Of a stretch of 61,837 bases of DNA, positions 32,001 through 58,402 are shown in pieces. The DNA comes from Chara braunii (lineage: Eukaryota > Plantae > Charophyceae), in contig BFEA01000018.1 of NCBI GenBank assembly GCA_003427395.1, forward strand, positions 2,942,905 through 3,004,741. Direction: 5' to 3'. The notes under the pieces are model-generated. The model ran no database searches and had not been told where the DNA came from. It saw only the letters and a list, made by a program, of their open reading frames with translations. Each line of letters starts with the position of its first letter. Within the stretch, counting starts at the first letter, position 1. The position numbers were made by a program, and so were the translations under genes.

Positions 32001-32441
32001 GAACGAAGAGTCTGTTCGAAAACTCAATTATGCCGCGCCACGGATGAACGTCCGAAAACCCGCGCGAATGTCTAAGCGCAAAAGACAAAATGAAAACAAA
32101 CAAGCAATCTACAGTAGTTTCGTCATACAGAAAGTGCAAGCGCTAAACAAAACGTTTTGTGTATGCTGCTCCGGGAACGCAGCGAAACAGGGAAATGAAA
32201 GCAACAAGGGCAAATCACATGCTAAGACAGAAAGCCGTTCACAGAGATGCGAGCAGCATGCAGCTTCCGCTGGCTGGGTATCACAAGGACATACGTGCGC
32301 CATCACCCGCCGCCGACCATGGGTGAGCGGTCAGCATTGCCAGGTTGTAGGCCAACATGTGATGGAGGCATAGATCTCTCAAGAGCCTGAAGACCAGCAG
32401 CGGTTTCTTGAAAGGTGGACGACATGCGGCGAAGCAAGCGG
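29010..32441. repeat. two tandem ~1.72 kb units with internal sub-repeats
   Basis: GCTAAAAAAACGACGGCTGAACCAAGG at 29011 and 30736; colinear, diverged copies. Confidence 0.93.
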
Positions 32442-33016
32442 CGGTCGAAACCGTGGACTGCAGGAGCATAGATCTGACGAGGACTTGGAGGTCGATCATT
32501 CAGCGGCGCCGCTGCGCAAACGACTGGAGGTGTAACAGCCATGTGCTGAACATGTGTATTGAAGGTTGACATCGTTGGATTGCATGTATAACAGTGGCCC
32601 GTCGTACGACGAAACGTGATGCAAGAACCAATGGTAGGCATCGTGTCCCGCGACCTGCAGCCATAGACCACGACCCTATGGACGTAGGACATTATGGCAT
32701 GCTGCACGAGGCATGTGCCAGTCGCGAATGCCCCATGTACGCGGCCAACAGCTTGCTGTTCATCGACACCCAGGAGATATACATGTATAATACGTTTAGG
32801 ACGGCGACAACGAACAGCATGGTGCACCAGTAGACCGCATTCCTGAACAACACCGGTATAGCGAACAGATTGGTAGCGAATGTAGTCCTCGAGTTCTGAC
32901 AGAGTAGTATGCGTGACATGATGATGCACAGGAGGTTGCTGTTGAAGCGCCTGCAGTATTGGGATGTTTTCCATCGGGGTGTCTGCAACAACACAATGAC
33001 AAGTAGAATAGAGCAT
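32303..33016 (-). CDS. unknown family X, paralogue B (putative OB-fold ssDNA-binding domain)
   Basis: HTTLSELEDYIR..ECGLLVHH..IHVYLLG..HRVVVYG..MPTIGSCITFRRTTGHCY..FNTHVQHM aligns with 33670, 49257 and 56850. Confidence 0.6.
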   Translation of the reverse strand: MLYSTCHCVVADTPMENIPILQALQQQPPVHHHVTHTTLSELEDYIRYQSVRYTGVVQECGLLVHHAVRCRRPKRIIHVYLLGVDEQQAVGRVHGAFATGTCLVQHAIMSYVHRVVVYGCRSRDTMPTIGSCITFRRTTGHCYTCNPTMSTFNTHVQHMAVTPPVVCAAAPLNDRPPSPRQIYAPAVHGFDRRLLRRMSSTFQETAAGLQALERSMPPSHVGLQPGNADRSPMVGGG

Positions 33017-33669
33017 TTATTGTCAGGAAACGCACGTCAAAATAGGCTCTCCTCCGCCCGCCAAATTGGACACATGGCCGGCGTAGCTATATTGCAGACA
33101 ATTTCCAATCTTCACACAGCAGATCGGCTGTTATGAAATACGAACAACGAAAGTAATGAAATCTCAAAAAAAAAACAAAGAACAGATGACGAGTTGTCCA
33201 TTCCATGGCAGATCTGAGCCGGGGAAACGGTCGAGTTTCCCAAAGCAAGAAAGCCGAGTTGAAATTTCCAAAAGGAGCAAAATGAATAAGAGAGACGAAA
33301 AAGCGACCATAAGAAAGCTGTGTTCGGGGCACCTTTCGGTCCAGGCACAGCAATGACAACAAAGCTAAGAATAATGGTAGAGGATGAGAAAAGAGGAGGG
33401 TGACGAGGGCGCCCAGCCCGGGTCCGAACTCGGGAGAATGCAGGGAGCGTGGCAGAGCATTCGTTTCAGCAGCCGGCCACCGAAACCAGCATTAGGCAGT
33501 ACAATTCTGCCCGCGGCGTGGGGGAGGGGGGCCAGGGCGCTGTGTCCAGCGGGTCAGTGGCATGCACCCCGCGGGCGCGGTGGTCGTAATGGTTTGCATG
33601 GCAGTAAACAGTAACAAGCGTGAGAACTATGCGAGTGAACGTGTCTGCGTCTCACCTTATTCGAGCTTG

Positions 33670-34188
33670 TCACAGGTTGTCGGATCCATGTGGTTTGCTT
33701 GAGCGCCCCGTGTTCGGAGGGCCCCGGGGGGCATTCGTTTCGGCAAAAGTCGGCGCTGCACTAGGCTTGTCTGCCTCCGCAGGAATCAGGGGTTGCGGGG
33801 GCATAGTGCGCATGTTCGTGTTGAAACACGGTATGAACTGTTTGCCGAAATACTTGTGCCCTGTCGTGTGACCGAACGTGAGAATAGTCCCAACCTCTGG
33901 CAATGCGCATCTTTCGTTAAAGTCGTAGACAGTCCCTCGACGCAGAAGCGGCAAGATGTCATTCTGTGTTTCGCCATATGTGTTTGACAGAGTCCAATGC
34001 GCAGCTTGCACCGCATCTTCCTGGTCCATGTCTGCGAGCGTGATATCGAGCACGCACGTCTCACCCGCCCACCTCCAAAGATGGTGCACAAAGTATCCTT
34101 TTTCGATGATCTCTGCTGGCACCTTCGGCTTACCATTTTGTGTAGCCTCTTCTCTTCGCGCGGCCTCTTCTCTTATATACTCTTCCAT
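33670..34188 (-). CDS. unknown family X, paralogue A (putative OB fold); frame open upstream to about 34350
   Basis: HTSTLQMEEYIR..EKGYFVHH..LDITLAD..RRGTVYD..LPEVGTILTFGHTTGHKYFG..FNTNMRTM. Confidence 0.62.
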   Translation of the reverse strand: MEEYIREEAARREEATQNGKPKVPAEIIEKGYFVHHLWRWAGETCVLDITLADMDQEDAVQAAHWTLSNTYGETQNDILPLLRRGTVYDFNERCALPEVGTILTFGHTTGHKYFGKQFIPCFNTNMRTMPPQPLIPAEADKPSAAPTFAETNAPRGPPNTGRSSKPHGSDNL

Positions 34189-34437
34189 TTGCAGGGTGCT
34201 CGTGTGGATGATTTCGTTGCGTTTGACTCGTTTCTGCTCCCTGGTTTCATTTTGAATGCGTAGTCGCTCACGCAGGCAAGGCCGATCGCGTTTAAGTGGC
34301 GGGAGCGCTGCAGGCGCACTATCTCCAACGTTTTGGGAGGAAGCGATAATCTGGACACAAAATCACGTACGTAGTGTGAGCGTCGAAAAACAGACGCTGA
34401 ACAGGTGCCAAGAAAACCAGAAATGGCTTAGCGGAAA

Positions 34438-35238
34438 TCATGTTCTCCGCCGAGCGCAGCAGTAGGGTGGAAGAACGGGAAAACTTAAATGAGGGTGCGG
34501 AGTTATGGATTTCAGGACTTTGGTTATAAGTTCGTCGTGAATGAACGATCGATAAAAGCGTATGTCTTGTTGGCCGAAATTGTTTATAGGCAGGTGGGGA
34601 GGCCCGATCAACAAATGTCGAATCATAACCAGCATAAAAACACCACAATCATACGAGTTTGTTTGAGCAGGGCCTCGAATGTTGAAGCATTGTATGGTGG
34701 CAAGGGCATTGAAAGCATCAGAACGACGACACAACCATTGGCGCATGTTTCGAGAAAACACAGCGTTGGAGTGGCCAAGGTTATCATCGAAGAATAATTG
34801 TTGGTTGTTTATATCAATGTACCCAAGTGCCCAATGATTACCATGCATATGTAGAGGGAGGAAAAAATGTGCAAACGTAGACGCGAGTCTTGGATAGCAC
34901 CGAGTGTCAATGTTTTGGTCGGCGAACGAGAAGTCACCGCATGCGACGTCGTGGACGTATGTAAAACTGTTCGCGGCGAGCACCGATGGAAAAGTGTCCA
35001 TCAGCAAGTCCATATAGTCCCCAATAGGAATGTCACTAAGCCACGCTGTTCCATGGAGACTACAATATACACAGTCCGCCGTAAATTGCGACTTGCCGTG
35101 AGGCGGCGTCCAAGACACAACGGGAACAGATGAACAAACAGAGAATAGCAAAGGTTGCGGGTCGAGCTGCAATGATGGAATGTTTGTTGAAGCAGCAACG
35201 TCGCCTGCGTGCATCGGCGCGTGCGGCCGCTCGGCCAC
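34438..35238 (-). CDS. Ulp1/SENP-like C48 cysteine protease
   Basis: WLSD...FFLPLHMHGNHWAL...FFDDNLG...PAQTNSYDCGVFML: His, Asp, Gln and Cys all present. Confidence 0.9.
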   Translation of the reverse strand: MAERPHAPMHAGDVAASTNIPSLQLDPQPLLFSVCSSVPVVSWTPPHGKSQFTADCVYCSLHGTAWLSDIPIGDYMDLLMDTFPSVLAANSFTYVHDVACGDFSFADQNIDTRCYPRLASTFAHFFLPLHMHGNHWALGYIDINNQQLFFDDNLGHSNAVFSRNMRQWLCRRSDAFNALATIQCFNIRGPAQTNSYDCGVFMLVMIRHLLIGPPHLPINNFGQQDIRFYRSFIHDELITKVLKSITPHPHLSFPVLPPYCCARRRT

Positions 35239-35482
35239 CGAGGTTGTATGCTCGACGAGGGCATCGTTCGGGAGCCTGTCATCAGTGAGAGAGGAATCAG
35301 AGGTTTCACTTGAAGAAATGGCGATCCGAGGCCCCAGATAGGAAGGGAGAAGGCACGAACGTTTTTTAGGCTGCGGTTGTTCATGGGCAGATGGACAGAT
35401 AGAGAATGGCGAAGACCGTGGGTTCAGCTGTGATGGCAGAACAGTCGTCGAAACAGCAGGAGGGGTCGGTGTGCGTGATCAT

Positions 35483-38400
35483 TTACCTGCTGGGGTTGTC
35501 CAGTCTGCAAACGCGCCGTTCGGGGGTCCGATCGAAGGCTTCAAGTGGACGAGCGACGATCTGCGGCCTCGAAATGGAGGTAGAGCAAAAGGCCAGAGCA
35601 GGGGATAGGGTAAGATCCGAAAGTTTGTCAAGGCGCAATTGCTCACGGACAACAGATGGATTTGGCTGGAAAAAGGTTGCGAGGTCCTTTGTGAATGGCT
35701 TTAAAATTACCAAAGCAGAACGGTTGACAACACGGGAGACAATGATTTAACCCTGTTGCGGGACGTTGTGTTTTCGTTTGTGGCCAGCATTGGGGCGCGC
35801 TTTCCACTCGACGACAACGAGAGATGTCAATGTCTCTCCTTGGATCCTGTAGACGTTCGAAGCGACATCAGACACAAATGGAAATTGGAGAGGTCGCACG
35901 TGGCATGTTCTCTGGGGCATTCCTGCACCGGTCGGGAGGTCGACCTTCGCAAAGCCGTATGGCTGTTGTCTGAACGTCGGGTAAACATCCGAAGGCAGGG
36001 CGACAGAAAGCGCAGCAGGGAGCTGTTCGAATGCGGAACGATGGGGGACGCGCACAAGAGCGAGGTCCGGCGGGGAGCTAGGAAGCAGCACGCGAATGTT
36101 TGCATTCGTGTCATGGAACAGTGCAAACGTCGTATGTTCAGGGAACCATAAAGAGTACAGAACACCGTAGGTTCTATTTGCGATGCCTCGAGCGGGATCT
36201 ACGTTCTGGGTGAATAAAACCGACATCCCGGGTAGACGGTCAAGGAACGCAGCGAATCGTCTGAGTTTGTTGTCCGGCAATGACATTATGAATTGTATAT
36301 CATGCGGTTTTCTATTTTTGAATTTTGCGCCGAAGTCTGCCACGATGCGAACAGGTTGATGATCACAAGGCAGCAGTGCACACAACGTGCGCGTAAACGA
36401 ATGCAGTAGCTGTGTACGATTGTCGTTATCCGGGACAACGAAAACAGGGAAATGGCCACCTTTTGGATTGACAAAATTCCGGCGCAGGTCGGGGTTGATG
36501 TTTTCCAAAAGTCTACTGTTGATGATATCTATAAAATCGTTTTCCCATATGCCCCGCCTGGCGTTTTTACAGTGGCGGCCCCATTCGGGGTCTGATCTAA
36601 ACCGAACGGTCTCGGTTAGAACAACAACCGTGTCGAAGAGACGCCAAAGCTTGAATGCTTCGTGGTCGGCGGTCGTGTCTGCCTTATCCAATGAAGGATC
36701 AGAATACACCGGCGTGTTGTTAACAGGGGGAAGCTGGAAGAAGTCTCCCGTAGGCAAGATATGCACACGACCGAAGGGGATATCCAGCTTTCTGGCTGCG
36801 CGCAGAGCTTGGTCAAGTCGAAGGAATGCATCTTTGTCCGTCATGTTGAACTCATCGATGATGAGTAAATCTAGTTCTGGCGTGAAGCCGGGTATGCCTT
36901 TCAGCTGCGCCTGGCGACGTTCGAAACAGTAATCAGCTTTGAGGTTGTGCATCACGAACCAGCTATGGAATGTCACCCCGGCGATGGAAACTGCAGCTTT
37001 GCCAGTCATTGCAGTTTTGACAACGCTGTGTGGATGCTGCCATCTTTTAGCAAAGGCATCGATGGCAGCGATTACGTGGGATTTGTCGGTGCCACCCTCT
37101 CCGGTGAGGAACATGAGGAGCTGCTTTTTTTCAATTACACCGGCCATAGCTGCCAGCGGCATCGGCGTAGGTATGTCTTCAGCTGTCGTTTTGGAGAGTC
37201 AGGTCCTGAGAAGGGAATCAGCCAAAAGAGAGAAAGCAAGGTGTTGTTTGCGATTGAGCGAGAACTGCACCGAGACATCAGAGATTGTAGGGAACAAGGA
37301 GTCGGGCGGTGAAGAGGGCTTTGTGGTGGGATTGTTAGCGAACTCCTTATTCCAAGGCTGAAGCGCGTTTGTGATCAGGCGGAGACGAGTGGGCCGAGGC
37401 AGCTAATGCCAGGCGTCGGGGACAGCACCGACATCTTCTACCAGAGGCGGCGCTGCTTTTGCCCAAGCGTGGATAGTGTTAAGATCGCCAATGGTTTGTC
37501 TCAGGAAACAGTTGGTCGATGATAAGTCGCCTGGGGCGAAGCTCTTACACATATCCAGTGCGATTGTTGCGCAGGATGTCATCAATTCAGACGACAAACC
37601 TGACGCATAGCCATCAGCTATCATTGACACGATTATGGCATTGTCCACGCGACCCGGCTCCACGCTATTTTGTGAGTCAGTGTCAGAAGGAGGACACATT
37701 GGTATAGATGCGTTCGATGAGCTATTAGGCATCCCACCCGAGGAGGCTGCATAGAGAACGCTTGCAGTTTGATCGGACGCTCTTTGATTACGCATTTCTG
37801 CTGCACGTTCTCATGCGACATGGTAGTCTTGCATTTGTAGGTAAATGGCGCATAGAAATGCAGGCATCTGTTCGTAGAATGAAAGGAAAGCATCATGCCA
37901 TGTGTTGCTGGGCGTAACTAAATCCGTCAGAATCCGAAAGGGTTTGAATAGCAAAAGTGACAGTTGCGCGTGCAAAGTTTTGGCTGCATCGTCGTTGCAT
38001 ATTCTGAGATCAGGAACGCGTGTAGAATAAGGCACGACAGGGATTGCGGGAAGTCTCTTGCGTGCCAATGCTTTGCGCTTATACAACGGATGGTTTCGAA
38101 GGAAGCTGCCATCGGTTTTGGAGGCAGCTGATTTCGTACAAGTGTAAAAATGCATCGTGAATTCGTAAAGAGACAGATGCGTCAATGCCAATGGTCGGAA
38201 AACGTAATCATCCAAAGGTCGTTTCACAGCAAAGCCCGCAGGCGCTCTCTCCAGCGAACACAAAGTGCCGGGATCATTTTGCAGCTGTTTCAGCATGTGA
38301 AAAAGAGGGAGTGTTTTGAAACCGTGGCTAAGATACACGCACGACTGCCGTAGCAGATATAGTGCACATAATGGGCCAGCGGTTTCTTGTTTGTTCGTTA

Positions 38401-41300
38401 TACTGAAAAGTTGAGAAGCAAGGCGGCGACGTGTTTTCGTTTCCGCTGACATTTCTGTACGCTCCTCTGCCAACTTTTCTCGCTCACAGCGTGCATCGAA
38501 CACAGCCAAGCGCAGTGCGACTTTGCAGTCAATTTTATGTTGGTCTTTGGTAGCATATCTGCAACAATAGCAGATACGGTCTGTCGCCTCTGCGCCACCG
38601 AATAGAGGTTGTATGTCGTGGTTGCATTTAAATCCAGCGAGCATAACATCATTGTAAGCGTTAATATATTCGGCGCCGAGGCCCCGCCGGAGTTCCACTC
38701 CGGAATCGTGTAAAACTGTCCGTTCGCAATGCGTCCGAGGGAACAGATAGTGACAGACTTCTGCGTTTTTGGTCATACGGGTATTCTTGAAACACGACCC
38801 AGTGTGAGCCCAGTGGTGTGTTTGGACAAGGAAAAGAATCAATGGCAGTGCCGACCAAAAAGAAAGCAAGCTCAGTGGCAGCGCAAGCATTCTGTTGCTT
38901 GTTGCGTGTGTGTGGAACGGATCGTCTGTGAGTTTAGGGTACGAAGCTGGAGCAGCGTTCTGCCAACGAATGTCGTCATAGGCGGGAGATGGAGTAGCTT
39001 CCAGGATGCTCTGGCGCTGCATCTGGTGCGAACTAATTAAAGCATGACAGTGTGCACATTCGGCGCTCGGCGGTTCGACCAATAACTGTGGTTTGCCTTT
39101 CCGGAATGGCGAGCACCGGGCTGACTGCGGGAGCGTATGCATTTTGTAAGTCGGCGCCGGTGCATGGCAGTGTGCACAAGGCAGCCGAGAAACATCTTGG
39201 GATGCAGATGCAAAAACAATGTTGTCCACGTATTCCGTAACGCGATCAGCGAGCGACGCATCTGCTTCCAGCAAATTATCGAAATCACGAGTTGTGGGCG
39301 GCGTGTTTTCAAGCCAGACGAGGCAGTGCAAATGCAATGTGCCGCGGCCCTGCGTTTCCACCGTTCCAAAATATGCCCGCACGGGCCCGAAGAGTCCGCC
39401 CCCGGGTACACTTTGCTGAGTCGTGCGGTCGAATCCCAACACTTTGTTAAAAAATATGGACATCAGCCGATCAAAAAGCCGCGCCGAAGCAATATTGTCG
39501 GCCATGGATAAACGCTTGAGATCTTCTGTCTCGACGTAAGGGTTATCGATCAACACCGCGCAGAATGCTTCCACGTCGAGAAGACCAACGTACGATGCAA
39601 GCGCGAACGAGGTGTCAGTGTTCGGGGTCAACGTATCGAAAATCGTCGGCTGACCGAAACGGTCGCAGGTGGCGAATGCTTCTTGACGGCGTGCACGTCG
39701 CTCTGCGTTGCTGCCCCAAACATACGCTGAAGCGCATTCAACATGACGAAGCAGATCTGTGACCGCCGGATCCGTATCGGGCGTTTTTAAGCCGGCTGTT
39801 CGTCGACGGGTGTTTTCCAAACCTCTGCTCAGCATTTCGGTCGTGACTCCGGCGATATATTGATGCAAATGGGGTTGCATTCTGCACGTGAGGTGCGAGA
39901 ACATGTATCCACGATTTAGCGGAAGATGGTCGAAGGCGGCCATGCAATAATACAGATCCTGCTCAAAGCGCCTGGAGCTCAGCAGACAATAATGCCTCGC
40001 GCAGAGCTGGCGCAAAGTGGTGACTCTTCGTCCTTCTTCGCCGGGATGCCCGCGTCCATATGGGAACAGATGCGGGAACATTTTGGCTTCTAGCGTCGGC
40101 TTAAAAAGGTTGGCGAATTTTGACGAAGTGTGGAGCATGAAAACCGGGTCGTTGGCTCGTCCAGCCTTCAAGAGTTCGACCACACGCTGTTCGACAATCG
40201 GATCCAGTGGCGCAGTGGCGTGCGAAAAAATCACAGACTTTTCAATGTAAGTTGTCTTGGTGGTTGTGCCCGGAGGGGCGTTAAGACCATCCTGTTCATG
40301 GCCCAACAACTTTGCATCGGCGTGATCATTCGACAGGTCTCGGATGACAAGCGTCGGCACAAACGCGGGATCATCGCGCGGAATGCTGTCAAGAACTTCG
40401 TCATCATGTTTTACATCAGAGTAAAGGACATTAAACGTCGTGTAAAAGTTGAGCAGGTTTTCCACCATCGAATGTCTGACGCGATGTAGCTTCTTAATAC
40501 GTGCCACCTGACCATCTGTAAACGGTCCTGCCAAGATAATGCGATAGAACGTATCTTTTGTTATCGACCTGGGAAGCAAAGTGGCTGTCGGCCCGGGCAC
40601 CAAGTCGAAAACGAGCAGATGGGAAAGTATCGAACGATGCCACCCACCGCGCATCACTCTCGTCTGGGCGAGGATATTTGTCAGGCTTGTCATAAGAAGC
40701 TCTGCCCAGGTCGCGCTCTGCAAAGCGGGAGGCAGCGCGCCGACAAAAAAATGATTGGCGATTGCGAATTTCGGGAGGCGAGGCCGGCAGCGTGAACAAA
40801 AAAGCGGTTGCTCGCAGGCGTCGCATATGTTGAAATGGACACTGCCGTCGGCGAGCTGCACAATGCCATTTCGCGACAACATGATGCCCAAGAAAACCGG
40901 AGACAAATCTTCGCAGCTATAATGCTGCACAAGATCTGGATATAACGATGAATCAGGATTATATAAAACTGCACGCATACGGTCGATGATGTCTGTCTCA
41001 GAAGACGGATGGATATTGACTTCAGTGCATAACACCAGTTCGTCACACACACAGCATACGAACTCCTCAAGCTTAACGGGACTGAGTTTGTCAACCAGAC
41101 GGCCGACGATCGTGTTTTTCAACGCTGGCGAGATGACAGAGGGGAACGGCGGACGCAAGGAATAACGTGCTTCTCGATCCTGGGCTAGTCGCTGTAAACA
41201 TGAATATATCACAGCTTCCGCAAAACGGCCAGTGACGATTGTCGGGGTTGATGGCTCGGGGTTCGAGACGCCACAGGAGAGGTCGCGTATGCAGAGTGGG
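35483..41300 (-). pseudogene. Helitron-like Rep-helicase: CxxC pairs + DUF6570-like region + HUH Rep + PIF1-family SF1B helicase
   Basis: One reading frame through ORFs 37811-41212, 37403-37795, 35747-37162 and 35483-35713. Rep motifs PTIFDTLTPN, ETQGRGTLHLHCL, YCCRYATK; helicase motifs GEGGTDKS, LLIIDEFNM, GDFFQLPPV, LTETVRF, YRIQGETL, *IIVSRV. In-frame stops at 37811, 37403, 37199 and 35747. Confidence 0.93.
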
Positions 41301-42585: not shown

Positions 42586-43230
42586 TCATGCGTACGCAGC
42601 GCCGTGTGGAGGCTGAACTGGCAGCAGCGGAAAAGACGCGATGGACGATGTGAAAAGCTCATCATGGAGATGACGTCTGTACGTCGGAATATCCAAGTAT
42701 GAAAAAGCGTCAGCATGCGACGATGTTGGCGAAGCCAGCAAAAAACGCAGCATCACGAGCATGAACACGCCGCAGTCATTGTGATTATACTGGATCGGCC
42801 CATCTATATAAACGACCTGCATGGAGAGGGGTGATTGCGGGATCGTGGTCTCTGTTTGTAGCCATGCAAGCAAATCACGGAAAACGGACAGATGCTGGTT
42901 ACCGTAGCTATCGTAAATGCAAAGGGTCGAATCTTTGACGACAAAACATGCCAGCGCCCAATGGCTGTTGTTCAGATGCAATGGAAAGAACCAGCGCCCG
43001 AAGTAGCAAAATGGTTGGCCAGCGGCGCGCGGAACAAGCAAATCATGTGCGAAGCGGTAATCCCGGCAAGCAATCACGAAGCTGTATGTATAGCATGATG
43101 CGAAAAACACGTCGGGGAACAGGGGCATAAGAAGTTTCGTGTATGTATCAATGTAGATATCATTCAACCAATTCTGGCCATGCAATGCACTGAAAGCGCA
43201 CTGCGAATGGCGAACAACGTAGTCTGACAT
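42586..43230 (-). CDS. second Ulp1/SENP-like C48 cysteine protease
   Basis: WLNDIYID...WFFPLHLNNSHWAL...IYDSYG...PIQYNHNDCGVFML; catalytic residues intact. Confidence 0.92.
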   Translation of the reverse strand: MSDYVVRHSQCAFSALHGQNWLNDIYIDTYTKLLMPLFPDVFFASCYTYSFVIACRDYRFAHDLLVPRAAGQPFCYFGRWFFPLHLNNSHWALACFVVKDSTLCIYDSYGNQHLSVFRDLLAWLQTETTIPQSPLSMQVVYIDGPIQYNHNDCGVFMLVMLRFLLASPTSSHADAFSYLDIPTYRRHLHDELFTSSIASFPLLPVQPPHGAAYA

Positions 43231-44322
43231 CGCGATCTGTGTTGCTCATCGCGCCTGCGGCGAACGTTCTGCATCAAACATAGCAGACGGCCGTATATAA
43301 GAATCGCTACAGACAGCAACTGACACGCTGCATTCTCCACGCCCGGCGAAACAGATAAACACATTGGGTAAACGAAATGTGAAAGTGGGTGGAAAAAAGC
43401 ATTCCCCTATAACGGATAACAAAACGGGCATGACTGTTTTAGACGCAGAGCAGGAAAAAACACCGGCTGGAAGCGATCGTCGATGGATGGCTTTTCGCTG
43501 ATAGAATTTCGGATATAAGCCACCGCCAGGGGGACTGAAGGAGTGCAGCACAAACAACAATGGCCAGAGCAACAATGAAGAGACCGAACAAAACAAAAGC
43601 CCGAAGCGAAGCCGGAGGACGTACCTTCGCCGAGGCACGCCGACTAAGGCAAACTATAGCGCGGAATTGGCCGGAGCAGTTTGTGAAGCAGAATAAACTG
43701 CACGATAAACAACAAAGATATGAGCGCAAATATGACGTAGTCAAGAAGTCTACACATCGACGGGCGTCGACACTGCCGAGGCGTTTTCGGAGCAGTGCGC
43801 GCCGGCTGAATCGGCGCCTCCACGGGGCGCTTTGGAAGCACATATGTTTACGGCGACGCCTGCGGGATAAGCATAAGTGGGTGCACAGGCTGTATCGGCG
43901 TCGGTCGCAAAGGCTCTGATGAGGACGAAGATTCAGTCCGCTGGCGATGTTTATGCTTCCTCGAAGTCAGAGGCACGTTGTGTTTCTCTGACAGTCACCG
44001 CTTTTGCGCTTTTTCCATTGCGGGGAAAAAGGGGGGTTCTTCCCGGTCACCCGAGCCGGGTATTTGCCATGCACACACATAACCAATAAACATACACGCA
44101 CACACACACACACCTCGTCATTTCCAGCGCGTGCGCCATAGCAACTTCGAATTTCGAAATTGAACTCCCGATGGCGAGCCGGCATAGCAAAGCAAGCGGA
44201 CGTCGCGAAGGCTGACAGCGCAATGCCCCACCATTCAAATAGCATTTTCTTCATTACCATGTTGTTTTCCCCTCTTAGCTCACCGCATGTCGATTATAGG
44301 ATCGGAGCTGCCAGCGCCCGGA

Positions 44323-44888: not shown

Positions 44889-45299
44889 TCAACTCTGCAC
44901 CCCATTTAGGCAAGAGACGCCAGAAAGCACGGACAAAACGGCACCGTGAGAGAGCACAACAACACTCACGTGGGCAACGTTACAGCACGGCGGAGTCCTC
45001 CTGCTGAAGCCGTACAATGCCGACAAAGCTGAGCCGAGCGCCAGTCGACGAGGCGTACCACACGTCGCATCTTTCGAGAAAAAAGATATGTATCGCATTC
45101 GGACGAACGTCGAATCGCATAACAAACATTCTCCGATGGCATCTCTGATGCGACATATCTGGGCTTCGATGTCTTCCCAGTGCCGGTAATCGCGGTTCCT
45201 TTCATGGGGCACCACTTGCATCCTGTTATCTAGGACTGTCAGCGTTATCAGTCTCTCACCATCTTCGGACAGATACCTCGTGGTGTAGGTTGCAATCAC
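44889..45299 (-). CDS. ORF of unknown function in the Helitron cargo
   Basis: 136 aa, ordinary composition, co-oriented with neighbours; no motif recognised. Confidence 0.3.
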   Translation of the reverse strand: MIATYTTRYLSEDGERLITLTVLDNRMQVVPHERNRDYRHWEDIEAQICRIRDAIGECLLCDSTFVRMRYISFFSKDATCGTPRRLALGSALSALYGFSRRTPPCCNVAHVSVVVLSHGAVLSVLSGVSCLNGVQS

Positions 45300-45469
45300 G
45301 GCAGCAGCCTGTGTGATTTCTTGTCAGAATACCCCATGCCCGGTCTGCAAACATTGTCTTGCGCGGTCTCGTACTGCTGTGTCCGCCTCACGTTGGATGG
45401 CGATCCATTCAGCAGAGTGTTGTGCGTGGCGTGCACAAACAAGGATAGAACGCCGACAGACGCCGGAAA

Positions 45470-45906
45470 AGTTTCAGCCAGGTCCTTGGCGACGCCGAGA
45501 CGTGCGTGAAATCCAGTGTGCGCATGGCGGGGCCTATTTCCTGTGGGCAATATACTTGCTAGGGTCTCAACTGAACACGGGGCAATACGATAACACGTCC
45601 CCATTCCAGCATGGTCGCAAAGCGACAATCGTTCGCCCACAGACAGTCCGATAAAGTAGCAGCCCAGTCGTCCTCAGACCAGGTGTGCAAAGGGTCAGCG
45701 CGCCAAGGCACAACAGTCAGCCACTGATCCGTTTCAAAATCTGTTCGTGTGGCGCCCACAATCTCTGTTGACTCTTTCGACCCTTGGAGGGCAACCGCTC
45801 GTGGTTTCAATGGAAATGCGGCAGCGGACTGTTTATCCATTTCCGAGACGCGGGCAAAGTTTGCCAGGTAATATTGCATCGTACGCTGGCATACACAAGG
45901 CAACAA
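45470..45906 (-). pseudogene. unknown Trp-rich family Y, copy 1
   Basis: LTVVPWRADPLHTWSEDDWAATLSDCLWANDCRFATMLEWGRVIVLPRVQLRP*QVYCP; similarity to copy 2 continues past the stop. Confidence 0.55.
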
Positions 45907-46079
45907 TGGTCAAAACAAGTCAAAGACTGCAACACCACCCGAATTTTCCCAAGTCTGTTACACTACACCCCATTGTCAACATAAAGCTCCTCATACATGC
46001 TTCTCTCCGTGTGTTATGCATTCCCCCCTCACCCTTCTTCTTCTGTCATTTTTCGCCCAGCTTCCCAATTTCTATTCGG

Positions 46080-48780: not shown

Positions 48781-48858
<78 letters not shown>

Positions 48859-48859
48859 N

Positions 48860-48934
<75 letters not shown>
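48781..48934. repeat. (TC)n microsatellite
   Basis: Direct reading. Confidence 0.95.
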
Positions 48935-48937
<3 letters not shown>

Positions 48938-49256
48938 ATAAACACATAGCCTGCGAACGAAAACAAACATACATAGCCGCCGAGCATACATATTGCGACA
49001 TGCATACACAATTATTATATGGAGAGCAACAAAGCAAAGACAGACAATACACACTAATTCGTCTTCAATGAATTTCAGCGATCAACGGTTGTCAGCACAC
49101 CAACCGAAACATTGTCCAGCCATGAATAAAGGAATGGGTATAAGCTAACAAAGGTCGGAAAAAATCAAAGAAGCAGCCTGATGTATACACGTAAATGACC
49201 AGGCAAAAATAGCACCCCAAAAAACAAGGACACCCTACTGTACAAAAACCGGAAAC

Positions 49257-49727
49257 TCATCTTACGTTTTCAGTGCGAGCCGTTGCATCGGACAAAGACG
49301 GTCTCTCTTGAACGGCGTGTTTGAACACGATGTATGAGCATATGCCGAAAGTCCACATCAAACAAGACTGCAGAGGGACGCCAACTAATCTATGGTTTCT
49401 GGTCTGGAAAAAAGTCACATGATCGCCCGGCTCAGGAACTGCACGGTGACGAGGGTAATCACGAATGACCGCTCTCCGGACAAACGGTGTAAGGCGCTCA
49501 GATAACGGACAGCGGTCGGCGAAGAAGCGGTGGAAATCAGACACCAGGAAAGACAAAGCTTCATCAACGAGATATAGATCGACGGCAAGAGAGTTTTCGA
49601 TAGCGCAAACGAGTGGGCCGACAACATAACCACGCTCTATGACGTTTTGATGGGCGTGGGGGGGACATCTGGTGATGTAATTTTCCAAGGCTTTTGTTGT
49701 CCTGTGCAGAATACATACATAAGGCAT
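49257..49727 (-). pseudogene. family X, paralogue C (putative OB fold), 1-bp frameshift near the 3' end
   Basis: [53 protein letters not shown]; diverges from copy D after QSC because of one missing A at about 49360. Confidence 0.6.
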
Positions 49728-50369
49728 CGTGTATAGACAGAACAACGGAAACTTCCGGGTGTAATGGTGTTCACAATACACCAGCACAACAAGGGACAAA
49801 ACGAAGAAAGCAGACGTCAAACGAGGGTCGGTTTGTCCCGAACGCCATGTATACAACAACTACCCCCCCCCCCCTCCCCCCTCCGTCGGACCATTTTGTT
49901 TCGAGCATTTGTAGAAGAACAAAAGAAGGCCAGTAAACCATATAGTAAACACACATACAGGACACATGCTCTTTTCTTTCTTCATTACTCCCCCCCCCTT
50001 TGGAAAAAAGCCACAAGGAGTTTATGGCAACACCAGCCGGCCCAATCCCTCCCGACAATCACCATATTCCCTTGACAAAAACAGCAATTGTTTTATGAAA
50101 TCTGATATCCACGCATTTTCGCAACAGTTGCGAGTTTTCTAACGCCGCCTCACCCCGGTACGTGTACAGATTGCTCCGCCGCTGCCCCGACCCATTCGTC
50201 TACCGTATCTATATCATCATTGCTCCGAAATTCCCACCCCTGACGTCAGCCACTCGGGAAAAGCTTAATTCACAGCAGCTACTCAATCTCCGCGCACTCC
50301 ACATGCCCCGCAGTTGCCCCCTCGTTAGTCATCTATTATGAATCCCTTGCAAAGACGAGGATCAGGTAC

Positions 50370-51290
50370 TTAGTCAATCTCTTTGTTGCGCATGAACAGT
50401 GTAGCTGTTTTGCCGTATGCTGCCACCGTTAGTCGGCGGGTCAACGTTATTTTCATCAGAGCTGCCATAGTAAAAGTTGGATGTTCAAATTGCGTGTTGT
50501 TTCTCCCTTTTCCCCTTCTCGCTATGTCGTGTTCAAGAGACATCTGCGTCCAGCTGCGGAGAAGGGTCAAAGACCGGTTGTTTAGTCGATCTCTTTGCCG
50601 CGTATCAACACTCTGGTCGCATCGCAGCAGGCCCTTATCCGTGGCTGTCAGGTCGCCATTATCCTCATCGGGGCTGTCATAAAAGAAGCCGAATATTCGT
50701 ATTGTATGCACCCCCCTCCCCTCCCTTTTCCCCCTCTTCCAAAAGCGTTTAGTTGTTGTGGTAGAGTTCAGCGGCCAAAGCAATACACAAATTCAGCTAT
50801 GGGGTTCAGCCAGGTTGTCCGGTGCAGCCCGCAGCTGGCCACCCCATCTTTATGAACTCTATATGCACCACACCCCCCTTCTCATCACTCATCTGCTATG
50901 AACCCTTCGCAGAGGCGGCCACACGGACGTTGTGGCAGTCTGCCGCGGGGGAAAGCCAAACACTGGCCGGTTCACTGCACATCGTAACTTCTGACCATCG
51001 GACCGACACCATTCTCGTCGGGGCTGTTATAGCAGAAGCAGGATATTCAGATTCGCCATTTTTCTGGCCACCTTTTTCCCCCGCGGACCATGCTGGATTT
51101 GAGAGACGCCTTTGTCCAACTGCGGGGACGAACCGAAAACCGGTCGTTCAACCGGTCTCCGTGTCGCGTATTGACAGGGTAGAAGCTGATTACTCAGATT
51201 GAGTTGCCCCCCCCTCCCCTTGCTCCCCCCTCTTTTTAAACCGTTGAGTCGTTATAATAGGGCTCGATGGCAAAAGCGATAGACATATTC
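50370..51290 (-). other. diverged tandem duplication of a ~350-500 bp segment with an unknown ORF
   Basis: 50665-50800 resembles 51015-51050 plus 51205-51295; ORF 50370-50783 has no recognised motif. Confidence 0.4.
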
Positions 51291-53074
51291 AGCATGCCCT
51301 CGAGAAACCCGAACAGTTATAGCCATTCTAAACAGGTGGCGTAAAGCACGTAAAGACCACGGCCAGAGTAGCCTGGAAGCACTTGGCCCTTTTTTTCTGA
51401 TGCATGCCCAGATTCTAGATTATAACAGCAATTGGATATTCAGATTGTGGATTTGGCGTTCCCCTCTACTCTTTTTTTTTTTAAGGACCTACTCAATCAC
51501 CATAGTGTTTGGGCCGTACGGCGACCGCGGGGCATGGCCATCAACAGTATGTGAAGTTCAGCTTCCGGGGCGCCGGACTTCAACAGCTGGAAGCGCCCGC
51601 TACAAAACTTCAAATCGGCACCCCGGTGACTCAGCAAAAAACGGCGCAGGGGGGGGGTCCACACTCGACGACTACAACCAGGCCAGGTGCCGACTAATTA
51701 AACCTGAGTCAGCGTCCACCGTCATTGAAGCCAAGAAAAAAACATGACAAAACTCACCAGCTGAGGAGATCCAGATGTGAAGACACGCCTGCAGCAACAC
51801 CATGCTAGATCTGATCAACACATCACCAAAAAGGGCATGTGTTGCAAATTTCAGCGAAAAGATGATATGCTGTGTTTAAGAGATATCTTTGTCAATATTG
51901 AAATCAAACTATTAAAGCTAATTAAACCCGATCCAGCAGACGCGACTCTCGTTTATCCCCTTCCCCGTCTATCCGCGCTCAACTTTCAGTACCAAAATGT
52001 TGTCCCCCTTGCTGCACATTCTGCGTCCTCAGCGACCACGGGTTTTTTATCTCTTTGGCCCCTTTCTGTCTGCGTGCTCTGCACATACAGGCGTGGCCCT
52101 TCACTGTCAGCTCCCCCCCGCCGATCTACCCATCTGCTCAATGGACTGTTTTTTTTTGGGTCGCTGCCAAACAACAAATAAGAAAAACTGTATATTCCAG
52201 CATAAAAGATCAACAATGAGGACATTCGTGAGTTTCCTCAACATTTCCAGGAAGCCAAAAAAAAAAGAAACAAAAAACGGAAGACAGAGAAGGAAAAAAA
52301 GACGGAAGCGCAACAGAGCGTCCTTATCTTTCTCCGCTTTTTCACTTGGAATAATACACCCGTCATTGGTGGGGGGGGGGGGGGAACCAAGAATCTGGAG
52401 GGAGAGATAGCAGAACAGGAAAAGGCACATGAACCGAGTTATGCGTTTAAAGACCCTTAAGCTGCACCCAAGCAGATCGAAGCCAAGGCCATATCAATGA
52501 TAAAGCTAGTAGTTGGAAAAAAACAAAAATAGTAATAAACATAAAAAAATATATAGCAAAAGTTTTTGTCCAAGAAAGTCGGAGAATCTCCTCGGCCAAG
52601 AAACGTAACCGAACGGAGGAACAAACGTGGCGCAGCGCACGCCAGCGCTCAAGTTTCTGCCTTCCTCACAATCGTCGAACGGTGTGGAGACGGTAGCTCG
52701 CAAGGTGCCAACGCATAGATAACGACTGTATTTGGCGCANNNNNNNNNNNNNNNNNNNNNNNNNNNNNNNNNNNNNNNNNNNNNNNNNNNNNNNNNNNNN
52801 NNNNNNNNNNNNNNNNNNNNNNNNNNNNNNNNNNNNNNNNNNNNNNNNNNNNNNNNNNNNNNNNNNNNNNNNNNNNNNNNNNNNNNNNNNNNNNNNNNNN
52901 NNNNNNNNNNNNNNNNNNNNNNNNNNNNNNNNNNNNNNNNNNNNNNNNNNNNNNNNNNNNNNNNNNNNNNNNNNNNNNNNNNNNNNNNNNNNNNNNNNNN
53001 NNNNNNNNNNNNNNNNNNNNNNNNNNNNNNNNNNNNNNNNNNNNNNNNNNNNNNNNNNNNNNNNNNNNNNNNNN

Positions 53075-53230
53075 GCTGTATTTAGGCCAACTTTCATGGC
53101 CGTATTTTGGGCAGCTTTCATGACCGTATTCTGGGCAATTTTCAGACCAGATGTTTACCGTCATCGAATAGAACCAGGTCATTACAGCTGTATTTACAGC
53201 TGTATTTGGGGCAACTTTCAGACCAGATGC
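53075..53230. repeat. ~24-bp degenerate minisatellite next to a gap
   Basis: Unit CTTTCATGRCCGTATTYTGGGCAR. Confidence 0.75.
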
Positions 53231-54867
53231 ATCGATAATGACCGTACGTTGTATTCGGGCGGTGGTGGCAGGAGATCGATTGGTCGTGTCGGGTTAACCA
53301 TCTGCAGTGTGCAGCCTGCAGCTCGCTGCTGATGGATACTTGGAGATTGTCAGCTCAGCATTGTAGATTCCCAGCTCAGCATTGCAGGATTGAGCAGTTG
53401 TGGGCGTCGACCAGCTGTAGTACTTTGTATGCTAGTTACAATGTCCAGCTGCTGGCGAGCGGAAGTGTGTGCTATCCATGTTCATGCTCATCAATAGCCA
53501 TGATAAGCAGAAGTGGGTGGAGGCCAATCCATAGAAGCTATGCTTATCAACAGTACTGGGGGTGGCTAACCATTGTCAGTGGTTAGCAACCTAGCAGAAT
53601 GGCTAGCAGCTAGCCACAGCCATGTTTAGTGGTTAGCATAAATGGTTGGGGTGGCTAACCGCAGCTATTCTGGCGGTGGTTGTTTGGCATCGCTATGGTT
53701 CGCGTATGATCATTAAATATATTGCTAGGCATGACACATCTGCCACACAATCGGCTTGTAACCGACCCTGAATAGCTGCCACATGATGACCCTCTGGCCT
53801 TTTTAACTTTTAAGTTTAACGCTCCAGCTTGCGCATCACACTGCTTACGTTGTGGTGGGAATGTCCCGACCGCTTTTGCGTGCGCGTCTTCGAGTATTTC
53901 AGGATTGTTTGTATGGACAATTGTTAGCGAAAGAGAGGGCTCGCATTCTGCTCTTCGTGGCTGTGCCGAACTGGGCGGATGCACTTGCTTCACCGACTCC
54001 GCCGACTTCACGTCTTTGGCGTAGGATATGTCATCTGGCAGATGCTGATTGCTTGGCCTCTTAGGATATAATACAGCCCACCGGTTTGGTGTTTGTTTGT
54101 TGGCATCATAGGGTAAGGTATGTCACCCTGGGACATCTTCGTTTGACTCACCTGATTCCAGTGGAGTTCGAACTCGCTCTGTATTTCAACAGTTCAGGGA
54201 TGTATCTCAACTGAGCTACACCAGTTGGTGCGTGGAACGTGTTGATTGGTTCGCACCGAACTAAGGTATAGGATATGTACCATCCGGGACGTGTTCATTG
54301 AGTTTCGCGTCATGCGGCAGGCCATCTGGCAGGTTTTCGTTGCTTGGAGTCTTTTGGCGAAACTGTTGGCTGTCACTGTATTTGCAGAACGCAGGGTTAT
54401 TCTTCTTTTACCAATGACGATCATTCCTCTTTTACGGCTGGCGGAGTGTAGATTAGTCTCAAAGCAAAGTCTTTGCAGATTGCCTAATCTAAGGAAAGGT
54501 GCGCTTAGGGAGAGGATAGGTGCTGACGGTGCTCTCTTCCCATGCTAGGAAAGCAGAAATCTGGCTGTTGAACGGACGGTGTTCATGCTAGATTAGCATA
54601 ATCGTATACAAGTAGGGTACGAGACGCTTGCACAAATCTTTGGGGCAGCGGCTGTCCAGTAGTTTGTCGAATGTCTATTGTCAAATCTTTGAGGGCGATG
54701 GATTTTCCTCAACTCCATGGAGATAGTTGGCAGTCTCAAGTTTTTTGAACAGGCGGATGAAGCAGGTGGCGAAGATGTTGACGTAGGAGGTTAGTAATGG
54801 TTCACGGAAACCTTCTGGGGATGTGAAGACAAAAGGTTGAAGAACAAAGTGGAGAGGTGACTTGCGC

Positions 54868-54985
54868 TGGATCGGCTTGCTGTAATGCCTAAGCAAGTGC
54901 TGTGCTACACGGTTTATTTGCTCAGCTTAGCCATTGGACTCAGGGTGATTTGCTGCTTCCATTTGCAGTTGGCTTCCCATCTGCT
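54868..54985 (-). pseudogene. Ty3/gypsy integrase core fragment
   Basis: QMGSQLQMEAANHPESNG*AEQINRVAQHLLRHY matches the rve HPxxxGQxERxNRxxxxxLRxY motif. Confidence 0.75.
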
Positions 54986-55671
54986 GTATCCACATCTGCT
55001 GTGAAGATGAAGCATGCACAACGAAGCATTTCCCCATGTTGATTGGTCAAGATGAAGCTGGAGCCATGTCGGATACAGCACTGTCAAAACTTTCAATGAT
55101 TACCACGTTCCCTCCTCTTAATGATTGATTGGTTTACGTGATTGATTGGTTTACGGATTGGTGAGTGATTAATTGGATCGATTTGAGATGATTAAGTGAC
55201 TGAATGAGTGAATTTGTGAGTGGCTAAGCGAGGTATAGCGAGTGAGTGAACGAGGGAGGGAAGGAGGGAGGGGGGGAGGGAGGGAGATCAGAGAAGACAG
55301 TGAAGGAGGGGAGGGAGGGGAAGGAGAGGAGGGAGAGGAGGGAGGAGAGGTGAAGACATGCATCACTTGAGGTATGCATTATGAGTGGTCAAAGAGAAGT
55401 GGCCTGGGAAGAAGGATTGTTTTGTGCTTGTTGAACATATTCCTGTTTGGGTAAGATGGCGCTGGCAGTGATGCCTGGGAGAGCAGCAAGCATAAGCAAG
55501 AGCATCATGTATAGAAAGTCAGCCATCCCTTTTCCATTCATGGTTAGAATTTTGGAGGTCTGTAAGGTGGTTGGGAGGAGAAGCTCAGCTTCTTACAGTC
55601 TCAAGCTGTCCGTACTTCAATTTTTTTTTTCGTAATTTCAAACATATTTGACCCTCCTTCCCAACCACTCA

Positions 55672-55675
<4 letters not shown>

Positions 55676-55738
<63 letters not shown>
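55676..55738. repeat. (TC)n microsatellite next to a gap
   Basis: Direct reading. Confidence 0.95.
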
Positions 55739-56230
55739 NNNNNNNNNNNNNNNNNNNNNNNNNNNNNNNNNNNNNNNNNNNNNNNNNNNNNNNNNNNNNN
55801 NNNNNNNNNNNNNNNNNNNNNNNNNTTGAGGTTCTTCATCGAAAAGGGCAGCCCTTGCTTCATGTGTCCTGGCCGGTAGTGGTTTAAAGTTGTGAAATTC
55901 CAAAAAATCATGGAAAAGGGTAGGCCTTAGTTGATGCCAGGGCCAGTAGCGGTTTTATAGTTTTGGATCTGAACTACAACCAGTAACCCGGATTCAAATT
56001 CTAAAATTTGTCGTTTGCCCGGGGGAACGCTTGCCAAACCTCAGGAAATGATGGCTGATGGGACAAAAAATTGCAGCCAGGAATGCGAATGGTCATGATC
56101 ACAGTTAGATGCTCCATGCTGGCAGCTGTAGCCATTTCTCACGACTGACCCAGGCCGCTACAGCATAGTCTACAGCCCCCTTGTGCGCTGGCGTACAATG
56201 GTGGGGCGAGCACGGGCCGTGATGGCTTAA

Positions 56231-56381
56231 ACCACGAATATTTCCTAAAGTTGTGCCCATCAACAGTCACAATTTTAGCAAACGTACGAGCCACTACAGG
56301 AGCGCCCAAATTAATTCGACTAGAAACGTTTCTGCTCTTTATATTTTTCTGCGGCCAATAGCTGGGCCAAGTACTGGTGGT
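56231..56381. mobile_element. TTAA-flanked MITE
   Basis: TTAA|ACCACGAATA ... GGCCAAGTACTGGTGGT|TTAA. Confidence 0.8.
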
Positions 56382-56644
56382 TTAACAAAGATATTATTGT
56401 CGTGTATTGCACTGACAAGTTGTAAGATTGTCATCCATCTGTGTGTTTGATCGAACTTTTATGGTGCACTGGCCACTATCGTTACTTCCGCCTTCATCCG
56501 AATAGAATGGCCGGTCATTATAGCAGTATTGGGGACCAGCTTTTAGTCTCGATAGAGCTATAATGACTGGGCATCCTATTGGGATGAACAACCAAACTTG
56601 TGAAGCGAGTAGCAGAAGCTGCTGGATCGTTCCGAGCCCAGAGT

Positions 56645-56830
56645 CGAACCCAAACCCAAACCCAAACCCAAACCGGAACCTGAACCTGAGCCCGAACCCC
56701 AACCTGAACTTGAACCTGAACCCGAACCTGAACCTGAACCCGAACCCGAACCTGAACCTAAACCCGAACCCGAACCCGAACCCGAACCTGAACCTGAACT
56801 TGAACCCAAACCTGAACCTGAACCAGAACC
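56645..56830. repeat. hexamer array (AACCCA/AACCCG/AACCTG)n
   Basis: About 30 units. Confidence 0.95.
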
Positions 56831-56849
56831 TAGATCGCTCCTTACTTTC

Positions 56850-58402
56850 TCAGTGCGAGCCGTTGCGCCGGACAACCACAGTTTCTCTTGAACGGCGTGT
56901 TTGAACACGATGTATGAGCATATGCCGAAAGTTCACATCAAAACAAGACTGCAGAGGGACGCCAGCTAATCTGTGGTTTCTGGTTTGGAAAAAGGTCACA
57001 TGATCGCCCGGCTCAGGAACTGCACGGTGACGAGGGTAATCACGAATGACCGCTCTCCGGACAAACGGTGTAAGGCGTTCAGATAACGGACAGCGGTCGG
57101 CGAAAAAGCGGTGGAAATCAGACACCAGGAAAGACAAATCTTCATCAACGAGATATAGATCGACGGCAAGAGAGTTTTCGATAGCGCAAACGAGCGGGGC
57201 GACAACGTAACCACGCTCTATGACGTTTTGATGGGCGTGGGGGGGACATCTGGCGATGTAATTTTCCAAAGCTTCTGTTGTCCTGTGCAGAATACGTACA
57301 TAGGGCCGGACGGAAGTGGAGTGGCAAAGAGCAGAACTGGTCAGCTTGTTTTCATTGATCTCGAAGCCATGCCATAAGGAAGCAAAATCCAGGAAGAGAA
57401 AACAGACTTACCTTTGCAGAGAACTGATGCTACAACGGGCCTCCGCTAAAGCTGTCTGTGCCACTGTGCTCTTGAGCTGAAATAAGGGTGTGCAACTGAG
57501 TGGCCTGTACCTGTGCAAGACAGAACAACACTGCACAACAGGAGGGAACCGAACAGTCTCACTCAGTGAGTACGAAGGATTTCAAAGATTGGCAGTTCTG
57601 GATATCTGTCCGGCAGATTAAGAACAAACACAAAACTGACCCCCCCAAAAAAAAACAGCACAGAAACAAACTCCTCAAAAGTTTGAGTCCATTCTCGGAG
57701 TCAACAAAGCTCTGTAGGGGCTGTAGATTCGAACTGCAAGGCCCTTAATCCAATAGAAAGTTACTAGAAACGGGATCTATGATGTCTGCATTCTTTGCTA
57801 GGATTGGTCAAGATCTGCCCATCCAAAAAAGTAGTCAGACCAGTAGAACTGGGGTCGACTGAACGTTCTTGACATAAACGGCATGGGAATGTGTTCTCAG
57901 GCCAGGATGAATCAATACTGAGGCTCTACTTGGGCTCAGAAGTCAAACAGTCAAAGATTTCTTCAGAAAGTAGTTTTGGCAACAAAATCACACAAATTCA
58001 AGGTCCCGGCTAAAGTTTCCAGAATCCAGATGCATCCAGGCTTAGGGGGGCAATACAGAATTTGAAAGGAGCCGCACGTTCAGGCCGAGTCAGACTGGAC
58101 AGAGGAATATCTTCTTGTTGTCAATGCACTCGAAAGACATTCTGCCGTGCACTGGAGCTGTGTGCCCTGCACTGCAGCCGGGTACCTTGCACTATAGTCA
58201 TGCTCCATGTTGCCTTGCTGCAGCCCACGAGGAGAAGGAGAGATCCTGAGCGGGCAGCCGTAGTTATAGCCGGTAGGGCAAGCAGCCATGGCATGTAGTA
58301 GCGACGTAGAAGGAGAAAGAGAGGGCTGGACAAGCACTCACAGGAGAGAGAAGGGACCCGAGCCGAGAAAACGCTTACCTGCTGACTGGTCGCCATAGCC
58401 AT
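56850..58402 (-). CDS. putative 3-exon gene ending in family X, paralogue D (exons 58379-58402, 57412-57476, 56850-57282)
   Basis: ATG..CAG|GTAAG (phase 0), TTTCAG|..AAG|GTAAG (phase 2) and CACAG|G join in frame: [41 protein letters not shown]...[10 protein letters not shown]...GSH*. Confidence 0.5.

Follow-up and report, generated by a model that had tools for sequence, protein, structure and literature searches.

Many Helitrons carry genes for proteins that resemble replication protein A (RPA) and have an oligonucleotide/oligosaccharide-binding (OB) fold, and HELIANO places RPA downstream of the Rep-helicase gene (RepHel) in the HLE1 group and upstream of it in one HLE2 subgroup (PMC11417382). 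Here we analysed a 61,837-nucleotide stretch of the Chara braunii genome (assembly GCA_003427395.1, contig BFEA01000018.1, positions 2,942,905 to 3,004,741; this whole stretch is called the window below), in which four copies of one domain, named A to D, were found on the same contig as an HLE2-type Helitron, two of them directly beside it. Chara is an early-branching relative of land plants. Helitrons move via a single-stranded DNA (ssDNA) intermediate and, to our knowledge, whether and how RPA-like genes help in their transposition is still untested. We tentatively read the Chara domain family as a Helitron accessory ssDNA-binding protein, a reading whose likelihood we place a little short of even.

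Four diverged copies of one domain

The four open reading frames (ORFs) of the initial annotation were recovered at the positions it gave, all on the minus strand: A at 32303-33016 (237 amino acids (aa), ATG present), B at 33670-34188 (translated from its first ATG), C at 49257-49859 and D at 56850-57269. They share a domain of ~130 aa, located by BLASTP, alignment and hidden Markov model (HMM) at 32525..32932 in A and by BLASTP and HMM at 33790..34218 in B, with the copies of C and D at 49362..49727 and 56904..57308, respectively. The copies are homologous: BLASTP related A to B (E 1e-15, 28% identity over 120 aa), B to C (3e-8), A to C (2e-3) and C to D (2e-79), and every motif listed previously was seen once they were aligned, with 17 columns invariant, among them H5, E12, Y14, I15, G41, P107, G110, T114, F115 and H121. 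In agreement with the pairwise comparisons, the domain HMM, run over all six translated frames of the window, retrieved exactly four copies (E 1e-62 to 1e-74) and no fifth, everything else scoring E > 0.5, and the 20 other long frames of the window held neither extra domain copies nor known domains. The check on the family proposed by the initial annotation, a profile alignment of A, B and C, was thus significant by both methods. DNA similarity among these three copies, judged by eye to be lacking, was also not detected by blastn at word size 7 (best E 0.27), and their synonymous sites are saturated (proportion of synonymous differences 0.79-0.88).

C and D are non-independent copies of a single unit of ~470 nt, with 96-97% DNA identity between about 49260-49725 and 56840-57310. 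The unit extends from just ahead of the conserved N-terminal motif to ~10 nt beyond the stop codon, and its flanks are unrelated on both sides. C has kept its start codon, with a start (M-P-Y-V...) as in the intact Chara relative of locus L003, but its frame shifts close to the 3' end, with ~30 codons still to come; the C-terminal remainder, with the motif F-D-x-D-F-R-H-M, lies in another reading frame of the minus strand at 49273..49362. The RepHel fragments and both parts of C were used as separate queries, none of them being spliced over a stop or a frameshift. D has an intact C-terminal end and lacks the ATG present in C and in the L003 relative. A 12-nt repeat array (GAACCYGAACCY-like, at least 13 units) occupies 56622-56855, directly after the stop codon of D, and is absent at the matching place behind C.

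The open frame of B spans 33673-34362, and its first ATG, at 34188, lies inside the domain, with no ATG back to 34362. The last ~45 codons of ORF A fall within a 1.72-kb tandem repeat, so that this tail is possibly not genuine coding sequence; alternatively, the repeat may mark the 3' region of the element. The unit of ~1.72 kb is duplicated exactly head-to-tail (29006-30730 and 30731-32443, 87-88% identity, with internal sub-repeats spaced 122 nt), and the last ~45 codons of A recur at 30596-30730 with 73% amino-acid identity.

Microsatellites of the (CT)n and (CA)n kinds abound in the window, which also contains seven runs of N; none of these runs touches any of the four ORFs. One of these assembly gaps lies between C and D (52740..53074), 2.9 kb past the end of C, and another (55739..55825), with a (CT)n run just before it, lies 1.0 kb ahead of the start of D. 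As D sits on a 3.5-kb island (55826-59313) with an assembly gap on each side, its distance from and orientation relative to C and the Helitron hinge on scaffolding. ORFs at 52649-53182, 52666-53121 and 52732-53085 were rejected as artefacts, their frames passing through N.

Distribution, selection and predicted fold

A profile search of 1.84 billion representative proteins returned six sequences at E <= 1e-3, four of which are true members (P0001-P0004), all from Chara braunii, and found no orthologue in any other plant or alga; P0005 and P0006 were discarded, their matches being due to low complexity or repeats. No relative was obtained in a word-index protein search with B or in a scan of JGI metagenomes with the B-type alignment, and P0002 was alone among the matches listed in a word-index search with the full-length alignment. 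Pfam gave nothing relevant for A to D or for any of the 13 aligned members, and PDB sequence searches with B, A and the family profile gave only chance-level matches (CerJ, E 0.006 over 46 residues; complement receptor 2, E 0.27). Copies A to D are themselves absent from every annotated protein of the Chara gene set.

Within Chara, the HMM identified nine more domain copies across four loci (L001-L004), and the family comprises three diverged subtypes, A, B and C/D. The C/D-type copies of other loci are 58-64% identical to C and D of the window, the L004 copy being more diverged (~34%), and the B-type copies have 35-41% identity to B of the window and 45-64% among themselves, with the A-type found in the window only. 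A C/D-type ORF precedes a B-type ORF on the same strand in L002, L003 and L004, with 0.4-0.7 kb between the two. Two partial third copies (L002 and L003) fit no subtype clearly; since they are not clearly A-type, a fixed C/D-B-A trio was not adopted. Members P0002 to P0004 are annotated as single-exon genes with an N-terminal domain, a long low-complexity tail (47-52% P/S/T/A/G/Q) that has no Pfam match, and a short basic patch at the end. Gene model P0001 is probably chimeric: its N-terminal part is a 738-aa open frame without Pfam match (L003:21834-24047, plus strand), spliced to a truncated C/D-type copy and one of the B-type. As far as public data show, this lineage-restricted family, with a single predicted OB fold per protein, is known from Chara braunii and one remote oomycete homologue described below.

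Between loci, DNA similarity (70-77%) is limited to the domain coding region, and the ratio of nonsynonymous to synonymous substitution rates (dN/dS, Nei-Gojobori) was 0.08-0.24 in seven within-subtype pairs, C versus D having 0.24 with a dS of 0.115. The domain is under purifying selection, and the selection on the protein proposed by the initial annotation is therefore correct. The same pattern would suit a host family of the ordinary, lineage-specific kind, made up of small OB-fold proteins such as factors for replication, telomeres or the binding of RNA or protein, and spread by duplication as a C/D-B pair, whose proximity to Helitrons would reflect capture of a gene piece, a nearby insertion, or chance in a repeat-rich 1.7-Gb genome. 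Besides the coding-only similarity and low dN/dS, this explanation is favored by the head-to-tail pairs of L002, L003 and L004, without a RepHel within 10 kb, by P0002 being one member sequence on one contig, by the single-exon organization of P0002 to P0004, and by C and D, which look like a 470-bp coding fragment duplicated into unrelated surroundings, as capture or gene conversion would give. The lack of an orthologue in other plants and algae would, however, be unexpected if these were core factors of replication or telomeres, and together with the Helitron neighborhoods considered below it leads us to regard a host family as rather unlikely, though it deserves serious consideration.

B was modelled with AlphaFold2 from the 13-sequence family alignment, in which several sequences are partial and all come from one species. 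The model has a mean predicted local distance difference test score (pLDDT) of 89.7 and a predicted template modelling score (pTM) of 0.82, the five models spanning 73.6-89.7 in pLDDT. Its elements (a short strand, helix 8-28, strands 36-51 and 54-62, helices 67-79 and 83-91, and strands 93-98, 112-124 and 129-135) include three strands, a helical insert and at least two further strands, which is the OB order. Foldseek comparisons, for which our statements rest on the top matches listed, gave PDB and BFVD matches at E 3e-3 to 4e-2 with template modelling (TM) scores of 0.35-0.52. In the PDB, the best was the OB domain of Ta0387 (E 3.2e-3), and the others listed include the MCM10 internal domain, both free and bound to ssDNA (TM up to 0.52), CST/POT1, TEBP-alpha with ssDNA, the TTC5 OB domain, RPA32/RPA14, archaeal RPA, Stn1-Ten1, Teb1, Cdc13, MCM N-terminal domains, HIN, CcmE and the anticodon-binding domain of lysyl-tRNA synthetase. 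In BFVD, there was weak resemblance to phage SSBs, CcmE and tRNA_anti-like proteins.

An OB fold of the five-stranded barrel type is supported by this model, and we consider it likely that the family is real and has such a fold. The RPA or POT1/TEBP-type fold of the initial annotation thus found matches of precisely that class, albeit weak ones and to a predicted model; with the significant profile alignment of A, B and C, both computational checks that it had proposed turned out in its favor. We give only a small chance to the view that the OB fold is a modelling artefact and that the family, although real, has a different fold and function. The alignment is shallow (13 sequences), a model from the four window copies alone was poor (pLDDT 39.5), the five models differ widely in confidence, and no Foldseek match reached E 1e-3. 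Nevertheless, the listed top matches are OB-containing chains in two independent libraries (PDB and BFVD), the order of the predicted elements is that of an OB fold, and the pTM points to a single compact fold. A ubiquitin-like beta-grasp fold, an idea raised by the Ulp1 protease gene next to B, found no support in the model or the structural matches.

The isoelectric point (pI) of the domain differs between subtypes, with values of 5.0-5.6 for B-type copies (net charge -3 to -7), 9.2 for A and 8.4-8.5 for C/D, and each domain has 7-15 aromatic residues. With many aromatics and an acidic B-type, the signs are mixed, and the domain may bind ssDNA.

The neighboring Helitron and its linkage to the family

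On the minus strand of the window, the genes follow one another in the order Ulp1, Rep, PIF1 helicase, Ulp1, B and A. The Rep ORF (37811..41212) encodes DUF6570 and Helitron_like_N (Pfam PF20209, 3.2e-19; PF14214, 1.2e-21) and is part of the annotated gene CBR_g19772 (P0007, 100% identical). It is followed by the PIF1-family helicase of the RepHel (35747..37162; PF05970, 6.7e-21), which is 49% identical to the helicase of L001, and by a Ulp1/SENP-type cysteine protease of the Peptidase_C48 family (34438..35238; PF02902, 1.1e-10) directly upstream of B. A second Ulp1/C48 protease, 37% identical to the former, lies upstream of Rep (42586..43230). DUF6570 is a marker of the HLE2 group according to HELIANO (PMC11417382), and, judged by their domains (Helitron_like_N, PIF1 and DUF6570), the neighboring genes are those of an HLE2-type Helitron-like element.

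One frame, free of frameshifts, runs from Rep through to the helicase end and is interrupted only by stops at 37811 (TGA), 37403 (TAG), 37199 (TGA), 35747 (TAA) and 35483 (TAA), the last within a donor-like context (CAG|GTAAAT); the L001 counterpart of this stretch is a single open frame. The stops may have arisen by nonsense mutation as the copy decayed, or some of them could be intron-borne. The model of CBR_g19772 (35750-40978) joins 40978-39179 to 36988-35750 and takes 39178-36989 as an intron despite the continuous ORF; this intron is probably an annotation artefact and the gene model mis-spliced. Ulp1 and B are in the same frame, with TGA stops at 34438 and 34363, 25 codons apart, between them, and B starts ~220 nt past the Ulp1 stop. 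A small intron that might join Ulp1 to B in frame was looked for: an acceptor-like sequence ends at the codon boundary near 34352, and a matching in-phase donor was not found by eye. A single ORF encodes both helicase and Ulp1 in the second Chara Helitron (L001:15096-18701) and in Aphanomyces euteiches (L006:2898-5183), which, with the Ulp1 beside the RepHel of the window, indicates a RepHel-Ulp1 architecture that HLE2 Helitrons of Chara and oomycetes have in common. Among the matches listed, the named sequences outside Chara most similar to Rep were all from oomycetes (Aphanomyces, Phytophthora and Nothophytophthora; 31-42% identity). This affinity could reflect horizontal transfer or a shared old HLE2 clade, and the selection of matches listed may bias the picture. 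Elsewhere in the window, two blocks of 11-nt tandem repeats (GGTTTGTACCT-like) with short palindromic junctions inside occupy 4771-5389, and an ORF at 44892-45909 belongs to another repeated family without Pfam match that is also present at L003:1886-2404 and L003:15430-16344 (35-53% amino-acid identity).

The domain family is adjacent to two different Helitrons. In the window, B and A lie directly 3' of Rep-PIF1-Ulp1 on the same strand, and in L001 the B-type gene P0003 ends ~1 kb before the second RepHel, also on the same strand. Rep and helicase of L001 are 48-49% identical to those of the window, a depth of divergence comparable to that between B and P0003 (37-41% identity), so that two anciently diverged Chara Helitrons each have a B-type copy. 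Beyond Chara, an unannotated 160-aa ORF of Aphanomyces astaci (QUTH01005949.1, L007:3435-3914, minus strand), 1.9 kb upstream of a RepHel and opposite to it, scored 20.3 bits against the family HMM (maximum of 8.5 in 2000 shuffles) and was aligned by hhalign with a probability of 84% (E 7e-6; 0.08% for a neighboring control ORF). Its best tblastn matches among the loci compared are the Chara B-type copies, and an exact-sequence look-up of this ORF gave no record. From these scores, it appears to be a remote homologue of the Chara family in an oomycete Helitron locus. The initial annotation had suggested looking for linkage to RepHel in other genomes; of the six non-Chara Helitron loci scanned, this A. 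astaci locus had a match and the other five had none.

The Helitron neighborhoods speak against an ordinary host family: two Helitrons 48% identical to each other both have a same-strand B-type copy within ~1 kb, a remote homologue occurs at an oomycete Helitron locus, and in the window, L001 and L003 the family is found together with Ulp1 ORFs, typical transposon passengers. This association with Ulp1 admits another explanation, in which the OB-like genes and Ulp1 form a module of several kinds of Chara mobile elements, not specific to Helitrons, whose partner would be the protease or the SUMO pathway. A PF02902 ORF does stand directly upstream of B in the same frame, and L003 has a Ulp1 ORF 8 kb upstream of its C/D-B pair on the same strand, where the 738-aa ORF, of no recognised family, is close by and a RepHel is absent; furthermore, Peptidase_C48 is only one of 20 passenger domains found in Helitron-like elements (PMC11417382). 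However, L002 and L004 are without Ulp1 (tblastn, E 1e-3), the helicase-Ulp1 fusions of L001 and L006 have no OB domain behind them, and no other transposase was identified in the loci, and we deem such a module improbable.

Helitrons generate ssDNA, which is bound by OB folds of the class matched here; an RPA-like accessory role is therefore the most economical reading of the family, and the element-encoded ssDNA binder suggested by the initial annotation remains plausible. B and A would then be cargo at the 3' end of the coding block of an HLE2-type Helitron and would lie inside the termini of the element. The HUH Rep domain would nick the element and the PIF1 helicase peel away one strand, which the OB-fold proteins may coat and protect, as a single strand or circle intermediate, or hold for the transposase. 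A, B and C/D might act as a hetero-oligomer, only some subunits of which contact DNA; the head-to-tail C/D-B pair, and an acidic B beside basic A and C/D, suggest such a heteromer. RPA14 and Ten1-type subunits are likewise acidic and are not known to touch DNA. More speculatively, A, B and C/D could constitute a transposon-borne 'mini-RPA', unrelated in sequence to cellular RPA, inherited with the HLE2 clade of Chara and oomycetes and acting with the Ulp1/SUMO protease of the element on the single-stranded intermediate, a proposal that we regard as a long shot. Cellular RPA70 is regulated by SUMO and a SENP protease.

Several observations weigh against a Helitron accessory role. At the level of sequence, the family (13 members) has no similarity to RPA, SSB, any Pfam family or PDB sequences; Rep_fac-A_C, REPA_OB_2, tRNA_anti-codon and DUF223 match none of the 13 Chara members, even at E <= 1. 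At the level of structure, no PDB match was obtained at E <= 1e-3, and acidic B-type domains are unusual for a DNA-binding surface. The linkage is incomplete, with neither Rep nor helicase within 10 kb in L002, L003 and L004 (three of four annotated Chara members thus unlinked), and the placement differs, B being 3' of RepHel-Ulp1 in the window and the B-type copy 5' of Rep in L001. Outside Chara, the HMM found no domain in five of the six Helitron loci (L006, the A. astaci Rep fragments L010 and L011, and the environmental L008 and L009), nor was it found in 33 Rep-related proteins (P0008-P0040), mostly from oomycetes. The Helitrons of the window and of L001, the two diverged copies compared, share no DNA similarity. 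The flanks of the family copies have no shared DNA similarity either and P0002 is single-copy, which resembles old paralogous genes rather than transposon copies. Finally, both C (frameshift) and D (no start codon) are damaged, and the conserved H-T-S-T motif and a conserved leader of B lie upstream of its first ATG.

Comparison with known single-strand-binding systems

A family without detectable sequence relation to RPA or curated families, yet predicted to have the same fold, thus stands beside two diverged Helitrons. If it is element-encoded, rolling-circle transposons would have gained single-strand-binding helpers repeatedly and from separate origins, and such small single-domain proteins would lend themselves to expression and to binding assays with ssDNA and terminal hairpins. 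Should it be a host family, Chara has a specific OB-fold gene set of unknown role, and the locus would exemplify how annotation can be misled by Helitron neighborhoods. For practical purposes, A to D are missing from the Chara gene set, and the adjoining RepHel model is probably mis-spliced.

With bacterial and phage SSBs, the Chara family has no Pfam match and only a weak structural resemblance, to phage SSB models. The MCM10 internal domain, an OB fold with a zinc finger, provided the second to fourth best Foldseek matches, in structures with ssDNA, and the highest query-normalised TM (0.52), but the Chara family lacks sequence similarity to it and a conserved Cys/His cluster corresponding to its zinc finger. 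The best structural matches to the model also include RPA32/RPA14, Stn1/Ten1, Teb1, TEBP-alpha and POT1, which are of similar size with a helix-flanked OB core; as in the small subunits of RPA and CST, the side-by-side distinct paralogues of Chara would suit a heteromer. Structural alignments to these proteins have 4-12% identity and TM scores of only 0.35-0.52. Subunits of the RPA32/Stn1 type have a C-terminal winged-helix domain behind the OB core and assemble with partner OB subunits by means of flanking helices, whereas the tails of P0002 to P0004 match no Pfam model.

The HLE2 helicase-Ulp1 Helitrons of L001 and L006 have the same layout as the window, with DUF6570, Helitron_like_N and PIF1 followed by Peptidase_C48, but no OB-like ORF after Ulp1, and the RepHel frame of the window, unlike theirs, is broken by in-frame stops. 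A possible functional parallel is with the RPA-like (RPA70-type) proteins of Helitrons and Helentrons, OB-fold proteins encoded beside RepHel on the same strand and thought to bind the rolling-circle single strand, the fold of the Chara proteins being a predicted one. Apart from the missing Pfam matches, the Chara family differs from them in having one OB per ORF instead of several in tandem, in having no invariant or near-invariant cysteine columns that would correspond to the Cys4 zinc ribbon, and in being limited to Chara and not always adjacent to a Helitron. With no Pfam match, a single OB and no zinc ribbon, the Chara family is not a member of the RPA70-like proteins, though it may act alike. 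RPA-like genes in Helitrons are already well known, and an orphan, Chara-restricted family with a predicted OB fold beside HLE2 Helitrons is a new variation on this theme.

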